Assembly (NCBI GenBank): GCA_977016875.1
Contig: CDRNST010000066.1
Span: forward strand, 1,364,001-1,428,000
From: Pavona decussata
Taxonomy: Eukaryota
Reading direction: 5' to 3'
DNA length: 64,000 nt
Numbering within the stretch: position 1 is the stretch's first letter; each line of letters opens with the position of its first letter. Of this stretch, positions 48,665-63,207 are shown piece after piece. The position numbers and the translations under genes were made by a program. A model generated the notes under the pieces. It saw nothing but the letters and a program-made list of their open reading frames with translations. It was not told the DNA's origin and searched no databases.

Positions 48665-49199
48665 GCCAGTTATAGAAATAGGAAAATTGGAATATCACTA
48701 CAGGTTTTCACTAGAAGATTATAACCTTATAGGAAGAACAGGAATTCATAAGATGAAAAAGAATGCTATTAGAATTTCTTCAATTCCAGTGTTTTATTGT
48801 TGTGAAAGTACATTACAATTCAGAAAATTTATGAGGTAAAGTTTAGTCACGGGAGAGGGGTTACTCCTGAAAATTTGTGATAGGGGTGTGCCGCAAAGAT
48901 TCTTGAACCCTGACCCTATAAGAGTAAGGGAAGGGAAAACGGATACCCTTTTTAAAGACCGAACACGAAAAATGATATCCTACCAACCAAAACAACAGCT
49001 AATGTGAACAGATTACAAACGCAAATCTCTATGAAAATCGCTTTTCAAATACTTCAGCGGACACTTCAGTTTTAAAAAGCTATTTTCTCTTCATAAAACG
49101 TGGCGCCTACGAGCTGCAATTTAACTGATATAATCCTTATCTAAGGACTAATCTAAGAACACATCACTAAATGAGGAAAAAAATGATACCCCTTGTAGA

Positions 49200-49395
49200 A
49201 TTCTAGTACATTTGAAGTATAATTCAAATAGGTGATAAACCCCTTAAAAAGTATACTTCATTTGAATTTTAAGTATACTTAAAGTATACTTACAAATAGT
49301 ATACTTAAAGTATATAACTTTTGGACATCCAGCAAAGTATACTTCACAAAAGTACACTTAAAGTATACTTTTGAGTATACTTCAAGTATACTTTA
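49200..49395. repeat. Left subterminal array of the palindrome AAGTATACTT
   Basis: There are multiple exact and variant copies (aagtatactt, aagtacactt, gagtatactt). Confidence 0.9.
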
Positions 49396-49429
49396 TGCAT
49401 ATGGCTATCTCCCAGTAAAATACAAGTAC

Positions 49430-49790
49430 ATATATTAAAGAAGTAAAAAACGCGCCCGAGTGCATTGTTGAGTTATATAAGCACGCGGGAAATTTTAAGA
49501 ACACGAGAGAAGTGCATAGAGAAGCACGAGACGTAGCCGAGTGCTTCTTGCACTTCTCGAGTGTTCTTAAAAATTCCCAAGTGCTTATATAACTCAACAA
49601 TGCACGAGGACAAGTTCTTTATTTCTTTTATAAAATGTTTAAGTAGCGCGCGCTCAAACTTTTGACGTAAGCAGCGTGCATTATTACCGCCATAAAGCAC
49701 GCGCGTGACGTAAGAAGCATGCTTTATGGAGCTATAATGAACTCGAACTGACCAATCACAGCGCGCGCAATTTCTCGATGGTTTTATAAT
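49430..49790. mobile_element. Non-autonomous element with a long internal inverted repeat (possibly Crypton-like)
   Basis: gtgcattgttgagttatataagcac..gggaaattttaagaacacgagagaagtgca (49459-49516) pairs with tgcacttctcgagtgttcttaaaaattccc..gtgcttatataactcaacaatgcac (49549-49604). The family call is an inference. Confidence 0.55.
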
Positions 49791-51559
49791 ATTAGATATA
49801 ACTAGTAGTCAAGACGTTTATCAGTATTACACTAGTATAATTTAATATTTATTTAAAATTTTGTGGCAAATCAGTGAAGACAAAAACTTTCTTTGCTCTT
49901 TAAACAGTAAAGTTAAAAAACTGACATCATTGTAAAGTAACACAAATCTGTCTTATTAAACAAAAAATATAACTTTCAATGTCTTCTGAAATACTATATT
50001 TTTATATCATATTTTGATCAAGAAATTTAAATTGAAAATAAGTTCACTGGGTAAAGCATTTGATAAGAATTAATAAGAAAGATTTGTAACTTTTCAATAT
50101 CAGGCAAATTTCTTCTCAATAGAATAAACTGATCTTAACAATTGAAAACGTAATTTTGAAATCATTGACAATTCATTTTCTTCAGTTTCAAAGTTTTCTA
50201 AATAGGAAAGACTTGGGGACTATTTACAAGATTGGAGAAGGTTTCCATAACGAGGAATAACCCTAGCTGCCTTGTAAATGCTCTTCAGGTAGGGGAAAAC
50301 TCACCTGAGTGTTTAAAAGGCGGTTAGGGTTACCTTTAAGCCTTCTGCCAAGGTAAACCTAGCCCTTGGGTATCTATTGTTTAGTCAACTTTCACTGTCT
50401 TTTTTTTAAACTTAGCCTCAATGCAAGTTATCTTGTTCCTGAGGGCAATCTTTATTGGGCTTTCTGACGTCAAGTCTGCAAATTTCTTACTTGTAAAACC
50501 TGTGAAAAATAAAGAGTAGGATATATATTTACTCCAGAGACTTGGCATTTAGACTTGATGAAGAGCAGCCAACAGCTGTAACATACATGACAAATGTTAA
50601 AATTTACCACTTGATCTGCTAAATGTTTGATAAGTTTGACGTAATATATTACATTCCCAGCTTTTGAAGCTGTCCCTTCCATGACTTTCTGAGTGTACTT
50701 GTAAAATTAATGTTACAACACTGTGCACACTCAAGTGTATATAATTATATTTTTGCAAATTTGATAGGAGAAAATAAAGCTTTGTCAAAATTTTTACTTT
50801 CTACAAAGAATCTGAAATAAATCTTTTCTAGCAGTGCTTTCACTAAGATTTTGAGGCCAGTGCTACATTGCATAGTACCTGTCAGAAAACAACATTTAAA
50901 GCTCCCTTACAAATGGAGCCAGAATGAATTTTAGCTGGTGATTCGGGGTAGGTCATCTTGTCAGGTGGGATCTCCATGAAGCTCTTTGGAACGTCTCACA
51001 GGATTGGCTCAGAAAATGATATACAAACAATAGCAACAATGAACCCTAGCCCTAAAACCACAGAGCTTCACACTTACAAGAACCAATGGAATAAGAGGTT
51101 CCAAAGAGCTTCATGACAACAGTGACAGGTCTTGCCTAAAGCACTGTTTGTAAGCATTGAACAAAAATATATAGGAACCAAATGATGGTAAGTTTGATGA
51201 ATGTCAAACAAAAGATATTTTAAGGAGAGTCAATCTAACTATAATGGAGATGATAGTTAGATTGACACTGCCTCAGTTTCTCTGTTGTCTGTTCAATATA
51301 TATTCGTGTAAAACATTGGCCAATTAACTGTATTGATCAAAAGATGATAAAACAGGTAGCTTCCTAGTGGATAATGATCTGGTTAATCACATTGATCACG
51401 TTCTTTTTTTTAACTAAATTTGTTGCCATGTCATGAAACTTTGCTTTTGTAAATTTTAGGAGATTTTTTTTTATTTTTTCATGCATTCACAAAAATTGTT
51501 TAATTAAGTGCACATGCACACAATTAATTAAAAATGCATTAATCTCTACTTATACATAC

Positions 51560-54500
51560 TCAGTATACTCTCCAAAATGTCTGTATCAACAGATGCTTTT
51601 CTATTTTTGCCACCAAGGCTTTTACCAATGAGCTCCTGCTCGCTATAAAAGCAGCTCAGCAGCAAGCAGGCTGTTGCTGTTGCAGTTTTCTTTGAATGTG
51701 CCTTGGTAAGGTGACTTTCAAACAGGTACACACCCCTTCCTGGTGACAGTTCAATCATCTGCAAGTATAAAAGACGTTCGTTTATCTTCAATTTGGCCCA
51801 TCGATTTTCATATGTACATTTTTGGGATATTCAAACTTGAGGACTGAGTAAAACTTCCCAGAAGGTGTACTAAATAATGAAATCCTACGATTATTTTTGG
51901 TCCAAAATTAACAAAGAACATGAGAGTATGGAGAGAGAAGGTTGCCGTATTCATTGTGCATTTAACCCAATAACTACAATGAACACAAAATAATGTTCAT
52001 GTCAATTATGGCTCCGTCAATTCCAAGCCCGCTCATGCGCCCCCACCCCCTACCCATGGGCATTTTTTCACTTCACCTTCCACACAGTAGGGAATTTGCC
52101 AATGATGGTCAGCCCAGTGGTGGGGTATTGTCAAAAGCAATGCGGTCTTTCGGATTTTAAAAGTAGCATATGCGTCCACCCCAGCATGCATGTTCAAATA
52201 CTTGCACTCTTTCCACATGCAATTAAGATGACGTAAAGAAGAATGTGCACAGTACATGAAAGAGCTGTGGGGCATATGAACGCATAAGCTGGCCACACCA
52301 TGAAGCATTTGCAACATTTTTTAAATCAAAAGGAGGAGGGGGGGGGGGGGTGATGCAAGGCTTGGAATTGACAGAGCTATCACTAAGGAAAACTAACTGA
52401 CCAATCAGTCAAAAGGTTATTTAAATTGCTCAAAATGGCAATAAGAATCTTTGAGAAATGGGTTTGCAAAGAAAATTATATTTTCTTGTATTGTAATTTG
52501 CATGCACTACTCTTACCTGATATCTTTTAGCAGTTTCCTGTGAAATTTTTCCAGCTCTCGGTACTTCACCTGGCAGCCCTACCAGACCTCTGGAATTATT
52601 TAGCTGCTCAGTCAGCAGGGCATTTGCCTCTTTGAGCTCTTTATTTTTAGCAAGCAAGTGGCAACATTGAGTGCATTCTGCAATTTGCTCTCTTCTGGGA
52701 CACTTCTTTGCAGTTGAAGTGCCTGGCAGTACACTTGTTCTAGGATGCTTTATCCCAGTAACTGGTCTCTCCACAGTTTCAGTGGTTCGCAAAGCTTGAA
52801 TTAAGTTGCTGGCTTCAGGTACGTCAATATCATCAGTGGAATAATCAAATCCACTGTCGTCAAGCACTGAAAAAAAGGTCCATGCCACAATCAAAGACTT
52901 TTATTATCTCAAACCTCAAGGCCGCGGTGGATACGTTGACCATGAATATATTCATTAGGCAAAATATTGGCAGGGGTACCACTTTTAAAATCCTAAAATC
53001 ACGAGCAGTTCAAAGCCGATTTCGCCAAAACTTAGCAGACGTATTGGAGAATGATCAAAGTGCACTATGATCGTTTTATAATGTGTAGATGGCGTCTTAG
53101 GGCAATACAGAAAGTAACTTAAATTAAATTTGTTAAAAGTGTGATTTTGTGTCCAGGTTTTCTCCTCCACGAAGACACAGAGAAATTTGATTTTACCACT
53201 GAGTGATCTATTACAACATCTATTGTGTCATATCATAGCCGGATTTTTTAACTTCAAGCTTCTTAAGAAATATTTTCCCTTAAAGGCGCAAAATCTATCA
53301 TGCTAAAATTCGAAGGCTTCAATCTTACCTTCTAAGGCTTATTTTAAAATTCGGCCCATGATATGACAATCTACAATATGCCTAGTTTATCATCTTGCCG
53401 TGTCAACTCGTGAAATTGTCTGTCCGTGCTATATTCTTGGACACAAAAGTGCTTGTTTTTACGCTTCCGAAGGCTTTCCGAGCAAACACGAGGGAGCTGA
53501 TTAATTCAAACCTGGATTATGGTAATTTTGGTAAAATCTTACTGCACGGGCCATAGATAAGTGTACGCAGAAATCAACAATACTTTGAAATTCACTGCAT
53601 TTGAATTGGATTACACAAGCTGAGCCTTTCCGCTCAATTTCCTGCTCCAAACGAGGAGTACCCTTACAAGGACAAACTGAGGCATGATCAATTACCCCTT
53701 GAAGCGATCTTCCAAAGTGGCCAATATTAACTATTCGGTTGCCTTTTAAATTTGGCGCTGGAATTGATTTCTTCTTCTTTGAACTGGACTTGCTAGTTTC
53801 ACTAGTCGATCCTTCACGTTGCGCAAGTAATTTGTCTTGCACTCGTCTCAGCGCCAGTGCTGTGGACGTTTTCTTCGCACCCTGTTTACGCAGTCTACCA
53901 CTCTTTCGATATTGCCTCCCTCTCGCCGACCTCACCATTTTCGAACGAAAGACACGTGCATGAATATTGCTGGATTTACATTTCGTCGCAAATTTCTCTG
54001 GTTCGCATAATTGATACATTTTTATCGTGTCCTGTCATGATGTACACAATCTCCCGAAGCGGACAGAGAGGAGAAGAAATTAATTTTTTTGAAACTCTAA
54101 CATGTTTATTTTTTGTCACCGTACAGCTTACATTTTGAATCAGTATATCTATATAGTTGTTTTTTAGCCTTTAAGGTTTGCTGTTGTTTATAAAAACCAA
54201 ATGCAGACTTCTGACAAAGAAACTTGCTGCGCTCAAACGGCCTATTTTAGTAATGCACAAAAAGTTCGTGCTACGCGAAATAAATCACGTGCGATTATTG
54301 AGGCAGAACAGAATATTTTTAGAGACATTTTCATGAATATTTCGCTTTTTGTCGGTTTTAGTCGTTTGACTTCGTGCATATTATTTAAATAAATACATTC
54401 TGATAAGAATCCTGTCCACCGCGGCCTTAATTAGACAATAATACCTGTCTTCAAAATTCTTATGCATGTCATTACTGCAAAATAATATAACACTGCCCCA

Positions 54501-56432
54501 TGTCATGCCATCATGTGATCATAGGAAAAAAGCCTCATTTATTAAAAAGAATTAATAAAATATATAGATAACAATTTTAAATAAAAACTATAAAATGTAA
54601 TTTTTGGCACAAAACTCACCAATCCTTTATGAATACATGTATACGCATCATTACATTTTTGTCTTATAATGCTTTTCAACAGCATTAAAAGTAGTAGCTA
54701 CTTACCAGAAATGTTCTCATAATCATCATCATAATTTTCTTCATCTCCAGAAGAAAGCATGTCCTCCTCAGGCAAACTCTTTTTTGCCTTTTGTCTTTGT
54801 CGCTCTTTTTGTGTTTCCATTTCTTGCTCCGTTCTGTCAAGATCCTGCTTCTTTCTTAAAAGCTTTTTCTCTTTTTCCTCCACTTCTCTGTCACGTTCAC
54901 TCACAGCAATTACAGACTGGTTCAGTTCCGAAAGCTGGCCAAGGATGTTCATGTCTCTCTCATCTAAGGCCTTCTTTTTTTGCAGCTTTTCTTTCTTTTT
55001 TTCCTCCTTTTCTTTTTCAGCCTCCATTTTCTCTTGTGGGCTTTTTGCCTTAGGGGAAACACCAGCTGGACTCTTCTTGGCTTTCTTTTTTCCTGCAGTG
55101 GATTTGTTTTCTTTTTTACCCGAGCCACTTCTTCTCTTCCCCATGGCATCCATTGCAGTTTTTGTTTTAGTCAACTGCTCTTTATCATCTGTTAAGAATA
55201 AAAAACAGGAGGAAGGATAACCCTGTCCCTCAGATAAATCAATACAGTAGAACCTCTATTTATTTCAGTGTCTCTAACCCGCAGTATTCGATACCTCTAT
55301 TAAACGGTTAACCTCTATTAAGCAGCCAGTTTTCAAAGTCCCGAGGGTGGCTGCCTAATAGAGGTCCGACTGTTTATTCAAATAAATCAATATTTAGAGC
55401 AGTAAATCAATATCCAGTAGACAGAGCAGATTTTTTATGTTTTTAAATGCTATATTCACTTGATAGCAATTTATCCAATAGCCAGAATTATAAGCCTTTG
55501 AACTACTGAGCCTGGATCAATAATAATAATAATAATATTAATAACTCCATTTGATGTATTCTTTTACTTGGTCGAACTAAGTCACAAGAAATCAAAGCTA
55601 ATTATTGAGGTCTTGACTTCAGAAAGACTACTTACATGTACAATGCATGATTCTTTTTTAAATATATATAAATGCCAAATTCTTTTAGTTAATTTAGCTT
55701 CAATTTAGTTGCCTTTGTGTAGTCGTATGTCTCACCAGTCATCTGTAAATGCATGCAGTAATTAAAATTAAGCTTATGTTTTCTTTGTGACTTTTTAGAT
55801 CAGCTGCACTCACCACTTTCACTGAGCACCACACACGGGTAATATTTCTTGTCCTGATACATGGCTATAGTATTATTGTCATCCCTTTTAAGTCCCGTTT
55901 CGTCCACAATGAACTTGATGTTGTCTTCGATAAATTGAACCAGAAAGTATCCTGAAAGAGGGAACAATTTTGTAACTCGCCTCCAAAATACACAAAATAA
56001 CAGTTAACATAAAAATATGGCTCGCGTCCTGGCAGCTAGCCCCCTTGACTTCTTCATGAAAGAGTTAATTGGGTTTTCCTATATATTAGTCTCACAAGAA
56101 CTACAGGTCAAGTTCATATATTAAAAAATGCATTTAAACAAAAGGCTTAAATATACCAACAGAAAAGCCAATATTCAGAAGAAGAAGAAGAAGAAGAGGA
56201 AGATAATTTTATTTTACTAGGGCGACTCTTACTGTTTCAATTAATCAGGCGGACTTAAAACTTGTCTACGATATATTCCGAGTACGATCTAGCCATGTTC
56301 GCGTGCAACCATGCATGCATTGTGCAATATATTTCAGGCAACCTTTGGCATTTTAACTTATAACAACTTACTTTTCTCTGCATATCTGCATGAGGGGGTT
56401 GTCTTCCTTTTGTCTTTCTTTGCGGTGCTCAT
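51560..56432 (-). CDS. BEN-domain protein of the CACTA element; exons 56432-56372, 55951-55814, 55188-54706, 52866-52517, 51758-51560 (last exon not securely located)
   Basis: All four junctions are GT-AG, in phase (1,1,1,0), and I saw no stops. The protein has an N-terminal YFLVQF...YYPCVVL domain, a K/E-rich coiled coil and a CxxC + coiled coil. The C-terminus GVYL...TATACLLLSCFYSEQELIGKSLGGKNRKASVDTDILESIL resembles BEN. Confidence 0.75.
52008..52380. mobile_element. MITE in a BEN-gene intron
   Basis: TIR gctccgtcaattccaagcc / ggcttggaattgacagagc. Confidence 0.75.
52920..54426 (-). mobile_element. Kolobok-like element (deletion derivative) in a BEN-gene intron
   Basis: TIR ggccgcggtgga / tccaccgcggcc with TSD tcaa/ttaa. 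ORF 53501..54019 (GNRIVNI...H..VCPC.G...EIERKG.A..I.F.C) resembles the N-terminus of Kolobok-Hydra-type transposases. Confidence 0.75.
55245..55372. mobile_element. pogo/Tc1-type MITE in a BEN-gene intron
   Basis: Ends are TA|cagtagaacctctatt ... aatagaggtccgactg. Confidence 0.7.
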
Positions 56433-56863
56433 TGTTTCCTATTGAAATGAATTCAGGAGAGAAAAGGCAATGTAGCGGATCAAAGGACTTCAACAAAGGA
56501 CTCCTTTGACTTCAACAGAGTTCGTTTCAATTTGACCGCCAAAACTAAGCTCCAAATAAGGAGAAAAAAATATCCCGTATACACCGGACCACCACATCAC
56601 ATTAGCATTTAATTGTCAGCGGTAAAGCAACAAGTAATGTGCGCACTCGCGCACTCGGTCACTTGATTCTTGTTGTCAGCGGTTGTCAGCGCGCAAAATA
56701 GGATGAAAAATGGCGGATAACACTTCAGGGAAAGATCAGGGTAAATGAGGTAAACGTGGACCCTACAACCAGTATCTCTCTCAGCCAGAACTAAAGATTC
56801 CTTGAAACACCTTGAGAAGATGGCCCAAGATATTGCAGGAGTCTGAAGTCTTGACATCCAACA
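56433..56863. promoter_or_regulatory. Putative bidirectional promoter between the BEN gene and the transposase
   Basis: A spacer of ~430 bp, relatively CpG-rich, lies between the two divergent inferred start codons. Confidence 0.4.
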
Positions 56864-59800
56864 ATGAAGAGACCATGCCATCCACGGGCGGGAGCTTTTC
56901 AATTTATACAAGTGAACCATCGCAGAGTTCTTTGAGCCAGACGGACGTGCCTTCCCAAACGGATTGGAGTGAGACTTCTTCGATAACTGCGAGGAAAATT
57001 ATTTCAAGCACAGCGAATTGTCTAATGACAGCGACTCAAGCAACCCTTTTGATGTTCCCGCAGATCCTAAACTTTCAAGATCAGAACAAGACAGAATACA
57101 TGCAGAAGAAGAAGAAGGTGTCGAAGATTACCTTTTAGCTTTCGATTCTGCGGAACAAACAGAGGACGAAAACACTTATAGAAAAGATGAGGCTTCAGAA
57201 GATCTTCCTTTGTATAACGGAGCACCCATCACTGTAGCTGTTAGCATGTTGTTAATCGTTACATACGCCGTTCGACACTGCCTAACTGGACTCGCTATTG
57301 TTGATTTGCTGACGCTTGTGAGTCTACACTGTGCAATTCCAAATCAGTGCGCATCTTCAATGAAGCTGTTAAAGAAATTTTTCATGAAATTGAAAAATCC
57401 TATCCAGTTTCACTACTACTGCACTTTTTGCATGGAGTATCAAGGATTGGCTATAGCAGATAACAAACTTTGTAAAAACAAGAGCTGCTTGAAGGACCTA
57501 ACCAAGAAAGACATGTCCTCATACTTCATCATCATTCCACTTATTTGCCAGCTCAGGGACCTTATTCAAAGTAAGTGACCTAATGATTACACAGGTTGTT
57601 TTGAAAGGGACACTATCATGGGGATTTTTCTGCATTTACGTAGTCAATGGAAAATAACCTACTGTAGGTTAAAATTAAATTTACCTTGTTGAAAAAAATT
57701 GTCTTGTTAGAAATTAAAAATTAAGTGAAATAAAAAAAAATTAACTGCAACATTTGCATTGTATATTTATACAAAAAAGCTGGCTATGGTGTATTGTGTT
57801 GTTCCAGAATATATCCAGACTCCCCCAGCAGAAGAAATTGGAAATTCCTTAGGGGGGGGGGGGGGGGTCCTCAAAGACCAAAAAATTTTAAAGAAATGTA
57901 TGGAGTTTAATTGGAATTTCCAGAGGGGTGGAGGTTCTTATAAAATATCCCTTCTGTGGGGGAGGTATGGATAAATGGAACTACATATTAAAATTTCAGT
58001 GTTTTAATTGGTTTAGACGCAATGGCAAACGTGGTAGGTGCATGTGTCTTTATCCCAATGTTTGTAGCCACTTTTGAGGTGTTTCTTAGGGTGTTTTTAA
58101 TCAAACCATTATTACACTCACATGCATTAGAAACTCTGTGCTATGTACCTGGATGTCTATCTTCTCAGTATCCAATGCGCACACATGGAATAATTGTTAA
58201 TTGGATTTTTTTTTTTTACTTTTTCAGAGACTGGAATTCTTGATCTTCTTAAATATCCAGTTAGTAGAAGCAAGATCAATCCAGATGCCATTGAAGATAT
58301 TCAGGATGGGTTATTGTACAAAAAGCATTTTGGAAGTGATGGCTTTTTTAAAGGTGTCTCAGATGAAAAAAGGAAAGCTGAAATCCATATAAGTTTTCAA
58401 CTTTTTACTGATGGTGTAGCCCTGTTTAGGTCTTCAAAATACAGTATTTGGCCTGTATATTTGGTTGTAAATGAGCTTCCACCAAACTGCAGGTATGCAA
58501 TGCATTCTCCTAAAACCTATATGTTAGGGAATCCATCATCATCATCATCATCACCTTCATCAGTGGCATCACCATCATTTAATGAACTTGGGAAAAAGCA
58601 TAAACTACAAATCAGTCCTTAGAACAGCAGATATGAACATGCTGGATATAGACGTATAGAACAGTCACTAATAATATTTTATAAATGCTACAAGGAGAAC
58701 GGCCCAAGTTATTTGGCCAACCTATTTAAACCACGAATCACTCCTTTAACAACCTTAGAAATAGTGGACTTAACGTCATTCAAAATTAATATAATAGCAG
58801 ATTTCGTCATAACTCTTATTCATTTGTCATCTCTCGGATCTGGAACAAACCGCCGCCTACTGTTAAAGCGGCCCCAAACTCATCATATCATCATCATCAT
58901 TTGTAAGGTTGATGAAAAGATATAAAAGTATGGTTTGTGAACATCTCTGATTTTGCACCCACAATCATAATATCAAATGGTCAATCTGCTGACTAGGAGT
59001 TGTACACTGTATGTCCCTGCTGGGGGGGAGTTGGCTGAAATCCAAAATGTGAAAAAGTTGAAAAGAATGAGGAACTAAATTATTTATTTTATTTCACTTG
59101 GTGTTGCATCATTTGCCCTCTTCTTGACAGTTGCATTGTTTGTGTTATTTTACTAGATTTGCAAGATCCAACTGCATTTTCCTTGGACTGTGGTTTGGAT
59201 ACAGCAAGCCAGATTTCCTGACATTTTTGCAGCCATTCAGCAAAGAATTCTAAGACATTTACTCCGAAGGTGTTTTTTTTTATGCATGGAAATTCCATTA
59301 TGATATGCTTTTTTCTTGCCATTTTCTGGGTATCTGTAATATTATTTTAATCTCCTTAATGTTACGATGAGATTGTTTTTTGTGTTTTGTACTGAAGTGA
59401 ATCTGTTAGTGTGTATATCCATTTTTACATTTTTGTGCACAATACAACTTTCCCACATACCTTGCAAAATTTTAATCTATTACAAGCACTATAAGTAGTG
59501 TGTTGGTTGAATGTGCCCAAATGAATTTAAAGAAAATCAAAAGTTGATTCCTAATCTACAGAAGTTGTTTAAGTGGTATAACCTGATTTCTTTTCAATTC
59601 TTTTTAACTGCGCAGGGGGCCAAAAGCCACCCGGGCAGTTCATGCTTTTTTTTTTTGCTTTGAGTAAGACTGAGCAAGCGTCGTGACTTCATGTTTAGTT
59701 TTAAGCTCAATGAGCTTCTTATTATTGTTATTTCTTATGAATGATAATTCCAAAAGGTAATGACGGAAATGGCATCAAAGTGAGAGGAATTTTGTTGAGT

Positions 59801-61326
59801 GCCACAGCTGATGCTCCTGCAAAGTGTTTGTTGCAAAACTTTGTACAGTATAATGGTTTTGGTGGGTGCCCCTATTGCTTGGAGGGAGGACAAACTGTGA
59901 AGACAAGTGTTCAAGGCCACACACGTACATACCCCTTCAACAGAGACAACCCAGTACTGGGCTACGGAACAGATCGTACACACGAAAACACGCTGCAGCA
60001 TGCTTATGATGCCCACAAGTCAAAACTAGAGGGAAAGTATTCCCCAGTTTGTGGTGTGAAAGGATATTCGTGGTTTATGTTCGTCCCTGGGTTTGACATA
60101 ATAAAAGGTATTGGAATTGACTACATGCACTGTGTTCTTTTGGGTGTGACAAAGATGCTCATGACTTTGTGGTTTGACAAAGCACATGCAACAGAGGACT
60201 GGAATGTTAGGAAAAGACTAGATGAAGTTGATAGGCGCTTACTGAATATTACACCTCCCAACTGTATTTCTAGAGCACCAAGAAGCATACAAAGGATTTT
60301 GGTCATTGGAAAGCATCAGAATTTCGCTCATTTTTATTTTTTTACGGTATCCCATGTTTATGGAATATTTTGCCTAATGAATACTTCCAGCATTTTATTC
60401 TGCTGGTTGAAGCAATCTGGCTATTAGACCAGATTTCAGTCTCAACTGAGTCTTTAAGTAAAGCGGGCAAATTATTGCGACACTTTTGTTTACGAATTGA
60501 GGCATTGTATGGAGCCCGCTATGAGACATATAATGTTCACTGTCTTCTACATCTTCACGACTGTGTAAAGAACATTGGTCCTTTATGGTCCTGCTCTTGC
60601 TTTTGGTACGAGGACTACAATGGTTACTTACGAACATTATTTCATGGTACAAACAAAGTAGAACTGCAGGTTGCATTTTCTGTTTGTGTTCAACAAAAGA
60701 TTCTGGAACTTGTACCTCTCCTGCAAAATGGTTCGGCCAGCAAGAAATTTTATGATCACATGACCGATGGACGATATTCTCTAAAGTGCAACCATGAAGA
60801 AATAGCTACTAATTTTTTTGCACTTGGAGTTTTGTCCCCAGCATCATTAAGTGCAGTTTTAGCTCATTATGTTGAAGAGGAACTACATGGGGAGATATCG
60901 GAAGCATTTGCATTTAAGCGAATCAAAATAAACAGAGATGTCATTCACAGCAAAAGCTATTTGAACATAAGACGAAGAAACAGTTACACAGTTGAAGTGA
61001 ATGACATTGGGTTTGTTGAAGTTAAGTTATATGTAAAGGTTTTTGTTCATTGTAGAAATGCTTTATTTTGTACAGATTCGTGCAGCTGCAAAGCTCCACA
61101 CTATTTCGGAATTGCTGACAGTTGTCTACTGCCAGCAACTGACATCACATTATCCTGTGACAGTTTCACCAACTGTAAACCACAGCATATTATTCCTGTT
61201 AGGAGAGAGAAATGTAATGTAATTTTCCCCGTCACAAGCATAAAAGCTCTGTGCATGTTAGTTGACTGTAAAAGCAACTTGTCCATGTTTGTTTGTAAAC
61301 TGCTTAATAGATACGAGAAGGACTGA
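56864..61326 (+). pseudogene. EnSpm/CACTA transposase; exons ~56864-57570, 58228-58492, 59157-59269, ~59741-61326
   Basis: Motifs: HYYCTFC...C...C, TDGVALFRSSKYSIWPVYLVVNELPP, FLGLWFGYSKP, TADAPAK...QYNGFGGCPYC, IDYMHCVLLGV, WKASEFR and YNVHCLLHL...GPLW..SCFWYEDYNG. The first two junctions are in phase. Lesions are a stop at 59251-59253, a frameshift near 60293 and no clear acceptor for the last exon. Confidence 0.9.
57793..57985. mobile_element. MITE in a transposase intron; a related copy starts at ~63895 and runs off the window
   Basis: Ends are gttccagaatatatccagactcc / ggaggtatggataaatggaac. 63895 starts tgggcaattccagaaaatatccata. Confidence 0.65.
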
Positions 61327-61974
61327 TTTTAAACAGTCATTGTGTTAGCTGCAATGAGAAATGATATATTAGGTAGCGGTTTTCAATTATATAACCATGT
61401 TAAAACAAATATTCAAACCTTCATTTCATGTAATTTGGGCAATTACAAAGAATGAACCAATCAAAAAGTGTGGACAGGGGTGGGTGAAGGCTGTTTTGAT
61501 TCTATTGCTGACTGGTTCTAGAAAAATGGAAGAAGTGTTGCTTAAATGGTGAGATGATATACATAAACCTGGGCAGTTTTTTCATTTCTTTTATGGTTCT
61601 TTTAAATAATGGATTACCCAGGAAGCACTTGATTTGGAAACAGTCCATATGCATGTATGCAATTTCTGATTAATTTATATTACCAGTATTTTTTATATAA
61701 GAAATTTATGTTTTTAAGCAATGTAAAAGCATTAACCTTAAGCTTATAAAATAAGATGCATTTTTAATTTGTTCAATTTAATAAGTATCTGGTGGAATGT
61801 TTATACTGACCTTATTAGCAGAAAATATGTAGTTTATATTGTTTCTGTAATAAAAGGTTTACATTTGAGATTTGAATGGCTGTATAGACACCTCGATTTG
61901 AACATAAATTATAGTTACAAGTAATGTTTTAAGGTTAAGTTTGGTGAATCACAATTAATTAGGTGCTTATGAAA

Positions 61975-62220
61975 AAAGTATACTTTAAGTACACTTTTGT
62001 GGTAAATAGCAGCTTCCTGAAATTATCCAATTTTCCCAAAGTATACTTTGAGTATACTTTTGTAACTGAAGTATAAATAAAGTATCTTTTCCACAAATTG
62101 GTTAAATGTACTTCGTTTGTACTTTTTATAATGAAGTATAAGTGAAGTATACTTCAAATGAACTTTTTTTTCAAAGAGTATAAAATAAGTATACTTGAAG
62201 TATACTTTAAGTATACTGAA
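61975..62220. repeat. Right subterminal array of the palindrome AAGTATACTT
   Basis: Multiple exact and variant copies lie next to the right TIR. Confidence 0.9.
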
Positions 62221-63207
62221 TTTCTACAAGGGACCCTATTTAAGGACTGAGAACCTTAAAAACCATACCCTATCTCGCAGCATGTACCTATATAGCCCGT
62301 ATATAGCAATATCCTCCCTGGGAGTTTAGTAATAATGTCACAAATTTTCAAGTTATTATAAGTAAAGATGTTTGTGATGAGTTACAATGCAACAAAAAAA
62401 TCAAGGCAGTGTGATTTAATGTTTGTGATAGTTATAATGAAAAGAAATATTTTTTCTAAGGTTTTAGAGTGTCACATCTACTTTTACTTACCTTCAGTAG
62501 ACGCATGACACGGCAATGAGCACAGTTTTTGTGATCTAATAAATTATAATTATAGTAGTTAGTACAAATTATATTTAAACTTGCTGCCATATTTATTGAA
62601 AACTGTTATCAAAAGCAGCAAACAAGAAGTTTTTCTACTAAAATATCTTTTAACTAAGAAATATTACTTACAAATTACGATAGCTAGAGAAAAGCTAAAA
62701 ATGTCTCAACTGTTGCATTTACAATCAATTCTATTAATTGCTCAGAGGTTTAACTTTGTCACAAGTCAGAGTTGTAACATAATGTACATTAAATGCTAAC
62801 ATAATAATTGTAATCAGTTGTTATTTGGCTAGATTAATGGATTCCACTGTTATGTTATACTCCTTTTCAATTGACAATCCCTTGTGTTTTAAGACTTAAT
62901 TATCAGCAAAATTCAAACAAATCAGCTATCATGAAGAGCAATTAATGTGTGGAACCTATTATATCACCTAACATAATTATTACAAAAGCAACCACTTCAT
63001 ACAAGAAAGTGTATTTCCTCTGTTATGTTTTGCTGAATCATACTAATTATTCCTTTCAAACAGTTTATTTTACTTGAACTAATCACAACATGCATAAGGC
63101 ATGTTCTGCATGAGCAATTGAGATCAGCTTAATCAGTTAAGAAACACATTTTTTTAAATTTATACTCACACTTGTGCTCAATATATTCCATTTTTAAACG
63201 TCTTAAT

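Follow-up and report, generated by a model that had tools for sequence, protein, structure and literature searches.

What reads the arrays of a short palindrome that line both ends of an animal transposon? It has long been assumed that animal CACTA/CMC transposons require a TnpA-like DNA-binding partner, and none with a recognisable domain has been named (PMC1636069). The window analysed here, a 64,000-nt stretch of Pavona decussata DNA, carries at 49190-62232 a complete cut-and-paste DNA transposon of ~13 kb with CCCTT... inverted ends. A sequence-only reading had proposed it as a CACTA element in which a BEN-domain protein would replace TnpA and bind the palindrome AAGTATACTT to pair the ends or regulate the element. 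Its features are as follows.

49188-49189, unstranded: left target-site duplication AC, flanks read directly
49190-49230, plus strand: left terminal inverted repeat, tip CCCTTGTAGAA, 41-nt arm, 80% complementary to 62192-62232
49215-49393, unstranded: left subterminal array, six exact and four one-mismatch AAGTATACTT sites, 11-bp spacing dominant
49433-49632, unstranded: long hairpin inside the left subterminal region, 84-nt arms, 85% complementary, also present in the second copy (contig C54)
50381-50499, minus strand: partner gene exon 6, C-terminal part of the BEN domain with its recognition helix (..IKIALRNKITCIEAK..), stop at 50381-50383; 69% identical to homologue P0017 residues 72-110
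51560-51758, minus strand: exon 5, first two thirds of the BEN domain from its N-terminal side; 71% identity to residues 5-70 of P0017
52517-52866, minus strand: exon 4, acidic stretch, CxxC and, directly before the BEN domain, a coiled coil resembling a leucine zipper; splice sites read
52920-54424, unstranded: nested, internally deleted Mutator-like element of 1.5 kb in intron 3, absent from the C54 copy
54706-55188, minus strand: exon 3, lysine/glutamate-rich, probably disordered or coiled; open frame with phase-1 splice sites
55814-55951, minus strand: exon 2, small five-stranded Tudor-like barrel (AlphaFold2 model), conserved in homologues P0072 and P0110
56372-56432, minus strand: exon 1, ATG at 56432-56430, phase-1 donor A/GTAAGT; read from the sequence, outside the public-run contigs
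56433-56700, unstranded: short head-to-head intergenic region between the two start codons, presumed bidirectional promoter
56710-57578, plus strand: transposase N-terminal exon, conserved basic motif, acidic stretch and Cys/His-rich region; placed by tblastn against the uninterrupted 313-aa ORF of L044
58209-58520, plus strand: transposase exon with the ..FTDGVALF..WPVYLVVNELPP.. motif; Pfam Transposase_21 match below cut-off and DUF1258 match
59741-61326, plus strand: transposase C-terminal exon, one 528-aa ORF in a related species
61976-62218, unstranded: right subterminal array, five exact and three one-mismatch AAGTATACTT sites, from a motif search of the window
62192-62232, minus strand: right terminal inverted repeat, pairs with 49190-49230
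62233-62234, unstranded: right target-site duplication AC, flanks read directly

The limits of the element are borne out by its terminal inverted repeats and by a second copy in the same genome, on contig C54, which is 96-98% identical and has its termini at identical bases. A 2-bp target duplication flanks both, AC on either side of the window copy and TT on either side of the C54 copy. Six independent insertions carry such duplications (AC, TT, TT, AC, TT and CT), among them the elements C104, C88, Clytia and L052. The termini are not the CACTA ends that had been supposed. They read CCCTTGTAG, and this tip and CCCTTACC are of the animal CCC type. The hairpin at 49433-49632 is probably a small secondary insertion outside the conserved design, and exon 6 lies ~360 nt closer to the tip in the copy of a related species. 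The nested insertion at 52920-54424 has dozens of 98-99% identical copies in the genome, and those of full length code for a YqaJ exonuclease and for a transposase matching Pfam Mutator (2e-80). The ORF at 53501-54019 is part of this insertion and lies outside the partner gene's coding sequence.

The plus-strand gene resembles transposases of the Transposase_21 family. The window region 58194-58622 matches Pfam Transposase_21 (PF02992) at E 3.3e-4 and 20.4 bits, below the cut-off of 28.6. The family assignment is made by transitivity: the last exon of the related species, ~90% identical to that of the window, has an ORF that is 40% identical (536 aa, E 1e-112) to a 958-aa paralogue without introns, and this paralogue passes Transposase_21 at 36.8 bits. 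By this sequence relationship the enzyme belongs to Transposase_21/CMC (CACTA/Mirage/Chapaev). In L052 and L054, the transposase genes that adjoin the BEN homologues have precomputed matches to PF02992 and PF06869. The earlier call of a CACTA-superfamily transposase stands. Motifs typical of the first and second catalytic Asp are found in the ORFs (..FTDGVALF.., and ..SATADAPAK.. followed by CxxC). The N-terminal basic motif, KRGPYNQYLS..IPRNTLRRW in the related species, is kept in C104, C88, L046 and L052. Relative to the uninterrupted ORFs of the related species, the transposase of the window copy shifts frame near 56979 and again within 60292-60382, and for this reason the copy is no longer autonomous.

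The partner gene lies on the minus strand, divergent from the transposase as had been proposed, and its predicted product of ~449 aa consists of a Tudor-like barrel, a K/E-rich linker, a CxxC and coiled-coil segment, and a C-terminal BEN domain. It has six exons rather than five. The last exon of the sequence-only reading ran on into intron 5. The gene ends in a BEN-like domain, which is divided between exon 5 (51758-51560) and exon 6 (50499-50384). Contigs from public runs, which may be RNA, agree with the predicted splicing of exons 3-6 at GT..AG sites. The introns that separate exon 4 from exon 5 and exon 5 from exon 6 are removed precisely, at the joints 51758>52517 and 50497>51558 (cut +2, GT..AG, minus strand), the latter in contigs of runs X1 and X3. 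A loose contig end at 52872 matches the end of exon 3 and indicates that this exon is joined to exon 4. Exon 5 has eight matches in its own genome, and exon 6 is conserved in C104 and C88.

Identification of the BEN domain relies on family profiles and on modelled structure. P0017 is a natural spliced homologue collinear with exons 5 and 6, and its sole Pfam match is BEN (PF10523), with an E-value of 8e-4 and 19.9 bits against a gathering cut-off of 23.2. Full-length homologues score 18.4-21.2 bits, and BEN is the single domain family that recurs in their Pfam scans. Exon 5 alone has no Pfam match at E<=10. A profile built from 21 family sequences (A2) and run against PDB sequences returns BEN domains as all of its top 11 matches, including NACC1 (1.1e-6), BANP (6.3e-5), BEND6 (1.8e-3) and BEND3 (0.009-0.04). 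The AlphaFold2 model (pLDDT 89.6, pTM 0.78) was made from P0017, which is ~70% identical to exons 5 and 6 of the window. When it is compared with PDB by Foldseek, the best 24 matches are all BEN domains, and the probability is 1.00 for the first 17. The best cases are NACC1 (TM 0.78) and Insv (TM 0.74, rmsd 2.1 A), with E-values of only ~3e-3. The domain is below the Pfam gathering score, and is BEN-like by the family profile and by the predicted fold, the BEN fold being one of helices alpha1-alpha5 in which a long loop links alpha3 and alpha4. The barrel of exon 2 is modelled at pLDDT 93.5 from an alignment of only six sequences. Its top Foldseek matches are the Tudor domains of ARID4B, RBBP1 and KDM4A (TM 0.68-0.80, with weak E-values >=0.08), and Pfam Tudor matches are faint (E 0.13-0.18). 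Pfam scans of all partner-gene exons find no TnpA-type or other transposase-associated family. The place of TnpA would be taken by an unrelated fold, as had been suggested, and the resemblance is one of proposed function only.

Within the window, the palindrome is confined to the two subterminal regions. The window contains 11 exact copies of AAGTATACTT against 0.11 expected, six at 49249-49393 and five at 61976-62207, and all 18 sites with at most one mismatch fall within 49215-49393 and 61976-62218, which agrees with the arrays first seen at both ends. Across elements, 18/18, 21/22, 18/19 and 18/19 near-sites lie within the terminal 450 bp. Neighbouring sites are 11 bp apart in 27 of 66 cases, and the first site is 24-26 nt from the tip in the subfamilies of this genome, in other, related species and in Clytia. 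At the same threshold, a search of the window finds no AAGTATACTT-like site in the presumed promoter at 56433-56700. Three subfamilies of this genome, elements of related species and Clytia share the two-gene architecture with AAGTATACTT end arrays. The transposases of the three subfamilies are 45-75% identical and their introns cannot be aligned. By sequence comparison, the palindromes are cis sites that have been conserved in subfamilies between which the remaining non-coding DNA can no longer be aligned.

The partner gene is retained together with the transposase. Its position and orientation relative to the transposase are the same in the coral-type genome, the jellyfish relative Clytia, Pecten and the L052 assembly. 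In comparison with the related species, the BEN gene has a dN/dS of 0.24 (0.20 for exon 3) and the transposase one of 0.23, and dS is equal (0.206 versus 0.209). Against C104, dN/dS is 0.09 for both genes. The BEN gene is part of the element, under selection and inherited together with the transposase. No description of this two-gene design, a CMC transposase with a BEN gene and end arrays, was found in the literature searched.

We consider it fairly probable that the BEN protein reads the AAGTATACTT arrays, much as TnpA or the Harbinger Myb-like protein reads its sites. The element is a two-gene CMC cut-and-paste transposon of the kind found in animals, with termini that read CCC and a target duplication of 2 bp. 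The Transposase_21 DDE enzyme probably recognises the conserved tip of 11-13 bp (CCCTTGTAG or CCCTTACCAAAAT). The BEN gene, transcribed in the opposite direction from a presumed shared central promoter, encodes a protein that may dimerise through its coiled coil and BEN domain and bind the palindromes. Short palindromes are recognised by BEN domains as homodimers, which place helix alpha5 in the major groove (PMC4281564). Since the repeats recur mostly every 11 bp, the sites would lie on one face of the helix. Binding could coat both subterminal regions and help to unite the ends or recruit the transposase, and we infer that the protein is needed for transposition. The other function first suggested, regulation of the element through AAGTATACTT sites, is unlikely, because the shared promoter is located mid-element (~56433-56700) and has no site.

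If the BEN protein reads the arrays, its recognition helix might be expected to change with the repeat. All AAGTATACTT elements have LRNKI in alpha5. The scallop Pecten has MRTKI and ten exact copies of a different subterminal repeat, AAGTTATAACTT. L052 has IGNMI together with ACTCACCY repeats that are non-palindromic and inverted in orientation at the two ends. The scallop and L052 lineages both keep the tip and the BEN gene, and differ in their subterminal repeats and recognition-helix residues. L052 has lost the conserved Arg/Lys of alpha5, and its repeats could equally not be read by its BEN protein. The BEN-less CMC relative L049 contains no GTATAC at all. The helix and the motif do differ together where the proposed co-variation could be checked, over two or three lineages, which favours BEN over the transposase as the reader of the arrays. 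The BEN and transposase trees are both unresolved at depth, so these changes can neither be polarised nor counted as independent events.

Most eukaryotic DNA transposons, for example, Ac, P, piggyBac and Sleeping Beauty, have transposases that themselves bind their own subterminal repeats. It is possible, although we consider it less likely, that the N-terminal region of the transposase reads the AAGTATACTT arrays here, using its conserved basic motif and Cys/His-rich segments. The BEN protein would then serve the element otherwise, by transcription repression or insulation, by countering host silencing or by chromatin targeting through its Tudor-like barrel. The presence of this barrel fits such roles, as does the reputation of BEN proteins as repressors and insulator factors (PMC4281564), and the covariation with BEN is weak because the deep trees do not resolve. 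However, L052 keeps both the tip and the N-terminal basic motif despite entirely different subterminal repeats. The last exon of the Clytia transposase is no closer to that of the window (34% identity) than those of Pecten (39%) and L052 (37%), and yet Clytia has the same palindrome. At a further locus, C2, an unrelated DUF7869 transposase is accompanied by a BEN partner and by palindromic arrays peculiar to that element (TTCGAACGG / CGTTCGAACG). The lack of a AAGTATACTT site at the promoter also counts against this reading.

Two other explanations separate the arrays from the BEN gene more completely. Where the DNA is AT-rich, perfect palindromes can bend or be extruded, and several transposons are assisted by host factors. 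The arrays might act through DNA structure or a host protein, with the BEN gene kept for some other reason. This is improbable: the exact 10-mer is kept across subfamilies whose transposases are as little as 45% identical, and the fixed offset from the tips and the 11-bp phasing are typical of protein recognition. A 10-bp palindrome is also too short for stable cruciform extrusion, and a purely cruciform role is excluded because the L052 repeats are non-palindromic and inverted at the two ends. The view that the BEN gene was captured from the host, or is carried along without serving the element, is close to refuted. DNA transposons do capture host fragments, and one homologue, P0103 (L053), resides in a 51-kb gene that has no neighbouring transposase. 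This explanation is countered by the constant arrangement of the two genes, by a dS equal to that of the transposase with constrained dN/dS, and by intact BEN-gene exons of which exons 3-6 are spliced in contigs.

A BEN protein that reads the arrays would give the element a counterpart in several known systems. The maize CACTA element En/Spm, with TnpD and TnpA, shares the Transposase_21 family, a short target duplication, arrays at both ends and a second element-encoded protein proposed to read them and unite the ends. In contrast, TnpA and TnpD come from one alternatively spliced unit rather than two divergent genes, and TnpA sites are 12 bp, non-palindromic and overlap the promoter, whereas the 10-bp palindromes here are far from a central promoter. 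The partner has a BEN fold instead of being TnpA, and the termini are CCC.. instead of CACTA. The animal CACTA element SmTRC1 and its relatives share Transposase_21, a 2-bp target duplication and TIRs starting CCC. In SmTRC1, alternative splicing gives rise to the shorter products, which lack a recognisable domain (PMC1636069). The SmTRC1 paper expects a TnpA-like DNA-binding partner, not then identified; it reports no BEN gene, and the word 'subterminal' is absent from it (PMC1636069).

The closest working analogue is PIF/Harbinger, which shares the animal two-gene design with a separate DNA-binding protein. In Harbinger3_DR, a sequence-specific Myb/SANT-like protein reportedly attaches to subterminal sites and brings in a transposase without a strong DNA-binding domain of its own. 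These elements differ in having an unrelated transposase superfamily, a 3-bp TSD and a Myb-like rather than a BEN partner. The BEN-solo factors (Insensitive, Elba1/2), NACC1 and BANP share the fold (TM 0.69-0.78) and a coiled-coil or oligomerising segment beside a single C-terminal BEN domain, with sequence identity to the transposon BEN of only 15-20%. They bind palindromes of 6-10 bp as homodimers with alpha5 in the major groove (PMC4281564, PMC7764960). They are host genes acting on host promoters and insulators, whereas the gene here is transposon-borne and its candidate sites are the element's own ends. By description, DNA-binding domain 1 of Tn3-family TnpA also has a fold like that of BEN and recognises a transposon end in a sequence-specific way (PMC9579193), but it is bacterial and lies within the transposase instead of in a separate protein.

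The BEN protein is a concrete candidate for the animal CMC partner: its fold is known to bind DNA, and the site proposed for it is precise. These properties, together with natural variants that differ in both site and helix, make the question directly testable, and the element could provide a simple system for the BEN recognition code. The finding places the BEN domain inside mobile elements of cnidarian and mollusc genomes, and such transposon genes bear on the origin of animal BEN transcription and insulator factors. Tentatively, BEN partners may be an interchangeable module by which animal DNA transposons in general recognise their ends, taken up by transposases unrelated to one another (CMC, and the DUF7869 type at C2) and each reading its own array. 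In that case host BEN factors such as Insv/Elba, BANP, NACC and BEND would be derived from transposon genes of this kind, like the THAP, BED and Myb-like factors.

The CMC (CACTA/Mirage/Chapaev) element at 49190-62232 is bounded by inverted repeats of 41 nt with tips CCCTTGTAGAA and carries arrays of the 10-bp palindrome AAGTATACTT just inside both ends. Eleven exact copies of this palindrome occur in the 64-kb window where 0.11 are expected, six at 49249-49393 and five at 61976-62207. All 18 sites with at most one mismatch (3.3 expected in the whole window) lie within 49215-49393 and 61976-62218. A search of the element's own genome found a single other copy, on contig C54, which is 96-98% identical and has identical terminal bases. 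The flanks of the two insertions read as 2-bp target duplications, AC at the window copy and TT at the C54 copy. The element and terminal arrays proposed by the sequence-only reading are therefore real, and the inverted repeats and the ends of the C54 copy show its coordinates to be exact.

Several observations place the transposase in this superfamily. Its exon at 58209-58520 matches Transposase_21 below threshold. The last exon of the transposase from a related species aligns over 536 aa at 40% identity (E 1e-112) with an intronless paralogue of 958 aa from the window's genome, and this paralogue passes Transposase_21 at 36.8 bits. Genes adjoining BEN homologues in two other assemblies match Transposase_21 and DUF1258. 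Like the animal CACTA-superfamily elements described by DeMarco et al., the window element has CCC termini and a 2-bp duplication (PMC1636069).

Compared with uninterrupted reading frames in L044, a copy from a related species, the window transposase shifts frame near 56979 and again within 60292-60382, and therefore the window copy is not autonomous. The C54 copy has three further insertions, and its exon 3 frames are broken. Dozens of other loci are 98-99% identical to the segment 52920-54424, which is missing from the C54 copy; it is a nested, internally deleted Mutator-like element inside an intron of the BEN gene. In full-length copies of this nested family there are genes for a Mutator transposase (Pfam, 2e-80) and for an exonuclease of YqaJ type. 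The family is present in high copy number, and the YqaJ or viral alkaline-exonuclease-like gene adjoins the transposase in full-length copies (L007:152-1561, L020:2665-3670). Just inside the left array, a hairpin at 49433-49632 has 84-nt arms that are 85% complementary. The C54 copy has it too, but the related-species copy, some 360 nt shorter at this place, apparently lacks it; a small foldback or MITE insertion is its probable origin.

The BEN partner gene runs divergently from the transposase. On the minus strand it can be read as six exons, joined in phases 1,1,1,0,1 at canonical splice sites, and predicts a protein of about 449 aa.

Exons of the BEN partner gene
56432-56372, minus strand, exon 1
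55951-55814, minus strand, exon 2, Tudor-like barrel
55188-54706, minus strand, exon 3
52866-52517, minus strand, exon 4, CxxC and leucine-zipper-like segment at its end
51758-51560, minus strand, exon 5
50499-50384, minus strand, exon 6, stop at 50381-50383

A five-exon, in-phase gene had been claimed from the sequence. The gene stands, but the exon count does not; the fifth exon of that reading continues into intron 5. Its implied last exon (..ILSMYK stop) was rejected, as was a first guess for exon 6 at 51367-51486 (KFHDMATNLV..), on the evidence of translated searches (tblastx) among subfamilies and contigs from public runs. The true exon 6 was found because it is conserved among three subfamilies. 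Also rejected as an exon was a 172-aa open reading frame at 53501-54019, because it lies inside the nested Mutator-like insertion. Public-run contigs over 50350-52915 contain the joints 50497>51558 and 51758>52517, each with GT..AG borders on the minus strand. A single contig of 1127 nt spans exons 4, 5 and 6, and a loose contig end at 52872 matches the final part of exon 3. Splicing around exon 5, which expressed reads had been proposed to check, is thus precise, although that these runs are of RNA origin is only a guess, and the argument is the precise removal of the introns itself.

Identification of the C-terminal domain required more than single exons. These were searched one by one, and Pfam gave no match to any of them, exon 5 alone included, because the BEN domain is split over two exons. 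A language-model look-up pointed to clusters of which a part carries PF10523, and a word search for homologues returned chiefly single-exon fragments. One natural spliced homologue from an assembled public run, P0017 (112 aa), is collinear with exons 5 and 6 (identity to the window 71% for residues 5-70, 69% for residues 72-110) and was used in their place. Its source contig, L043 (Logan ERR9592190, 1391 nt), encodes the exon 5 and exon 6 part only, with unrelated, stop-containing sequence 5' of it, and may represent a truncated or processed copy, or else an alternative transcript.

In Pfam, P0017 matches BEN only, at 19.9 bits against a cut-off of 23.2 bits, and full-length homologues from an exhaustive search score 18-21 bits. 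Searches of PDB sequences by phmmer with exon 5 or P0017 returned chance matches only (cerebellin, Csm2). When a profile of 21 family sequences was used instead, the first 11 matches were all BEN domains, led by NACC1 (1e-6) and BANP (6e-5) and followed by BEND6 and BEND3. An AlphaFold2 model built on the same alignment, representing the 70%-identical homologue P0017 rather than the window protein, has a pLDDT of 89.6. Foldseek lists nothing but BEN domains among the model's best 24 matches, at modest E-values starting from 3e-3; TM is 0.78 for NACC1 and 0.74 for Insv (4ix7), the latter with an rmsd of 2.1 A. The BEN assignment first made from the sequence is thus upheld by family profile and predicted fold but not by Pfam's gathering threshold, and on this evidence the domain is a divergent BEN domain that falls below that formal limit.

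Upstream of it, exon 2 (55814-55951) is predicted to fold as a small Tudor-like barrel (pLDDT 93.5), with the Tudor domains of ARID4B, RBBP1 and KDM4A as top matches at weak E-values. The CxxC and leucine-zipper-like segment of exon 4 recurs directly upstream of BEN in homologues, and the order Tudor-like, coiled coil, BEN recurs in homologues of other animals. For one BEN homologue, P0103 (L053:10001-61155, GCA_041260155.1), the gene covers 51 kb, its introns are large and its surroundings showed no transposase; this may be a domesticated gene of the host or else a prediction joined in error.

The pairing of the two genes is conserved well beyond the window. BEN exon 5 and the last transposase exon occur together, in the same mirror arrangement, in diverged subfamilies on contigs C104 (72% and 75% identical to the window, respectively) and C88 (57% and 45%). 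In both elements the tips read CCCTT, a 2-bp duplication is present and each end carries a AAGTATACTT array; between subfamilies the exons and ends alone still align. The same design and motif are found in two complete related-species copies (L044, L045), in the more distant L046 and in a Clytia hemisphaerica element (L047), whose BEN exon 5 is 37% and transposase 34-53% identical to the window. Across elements with the motif, the first AAGTATACTT site lies 24-26 nt from the tip, nearly every near-site falls in the outermost 450 bp, and adjacent sites are 11 bp apart in 27 of 66 cases. In the comparison with the related species, BEN gene and transposase have dN/dS ratios of 0.24 and 0.23 at equal dS (0.206 and 0.209); against C104 the ratio is 0.09 for both. 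These low, matching ratios at equal dS therefore mark the BEN gene as a selected, co-inherited component of the element.

Paired AAGTATACTT sites also occur elsewhere in this genome, at C19:396524-396701, C193:92377-92434, C274:1510508-1510565, C331:57773-57830, C129:1876333-1876390 and C100:842531-842586. Four of these six loci have one common unit (AAGTATACTTTTGGGTGTTCC..), and some paired-site loci lie about 1.7 kb from fragments resembling the transposase C terminus. These loci probably arose by deletion and were mobilised in trans.

Which protein reads the arrays can be approached through elements whose repeats differ. Architecture and tip are kept in the Pecten maximus element L054 and in L052, and the subterminal repeats are different in each. 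The L054 locus, which covers the BEN-side end only, contains the 12-bp palindrome AAGTTATAACTT in ten exact copies between 18573 and 19219, in the final ~700 bp ahead of the tip at ~19262. In L052 the two ends carry ACTCACCY repeats, inverted with respect to each other. In crystals of BEN domains with DNA, the C-terminal helix sits in the major groove (PMC4281564). In the family alignment, this helix, alpha5, reads LRNKI in every AAGTATACTT element, MRTKI in Pecten and IGNMI in L052. The basic motif conserved at the transposase N terminus is still present in L052. BEN helix and repeat motif thus differ together in both cases, but lineages are few, and trees of the last transposase exon and BEN exon 5, built to polarise the motif changes, left their deep nodes unresolved, so no order of changes is drawn.

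Two loci in the same genome bear on this question. L049, a BEN-less CMC relative, was searched for GTATAC and has none. This element (L049:144-6966, contig C185) has a true CACT.. inverted repeat (CCACTTCAAAACAAATC), an intronless 958-aa transposase and a divergent 300-aa K-rich frame, without a BEN domain, that ends in CxxC and a coiled coil and may be a partner gene lacking the BEN module. At C2:2456096-2466000 (L050:7096-7647, L051:1-8000), an unrelated transposase-like frame (Pfam DUF7869, 5e-20) is convergent with a coiled-coil and BEN gene that passes Pfam BEN at 29.7 bits, and arrays with a 43-bp period on both flanks are built on TTCGAACGG and the palindrome CGTTCGAACG. CMC transposase fragments (Transposase_21, 64 bits) adjoin this element.

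Across these few lineages, the differences in motif and helix, the transposase motif kept in L052, L049 and the C2 locus favour the BEN protein as the putative reader of the arrays. That the transposase reads them instead, leaving the BEN protein a chromatin or regulatory role, is the less likely alternative. Regulation of the element through the palindromes had also been suggested; promoter control by AAGTATACTT sites is unlikely, because the presumed head-to-head promoter (~56433-56700) contains no site.

None of the papers searched describes a CMC element, or any other eukaryotic transposon, paired with a BEN gene. Closest to it comes the bacterial Tn3 transposase, in which an internal BEN-like DNA-binding domain reads the inverted repeat (PMC9579193); there, unlike here, the domain lies inside the transposase itself. 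BEN domains of Insv, Elba and NAC1 bind 6-10-bp palindromes as homodimers (PMC4281564, PMC7764960). Judging from sequence, the partner protein probably binds the arrays and thereby assists synapsis or recruits the transposase. As a coiled-coil dimer, it would contact the palindromes along one face of the DNA in the two subterminal regions, and reading of the conserved tip would be left to the transposase. In this proposed function the BEN partner would resemble TnpA of En/Spm and the Myb-like protein of Harbinger, each of an unrelated fold.
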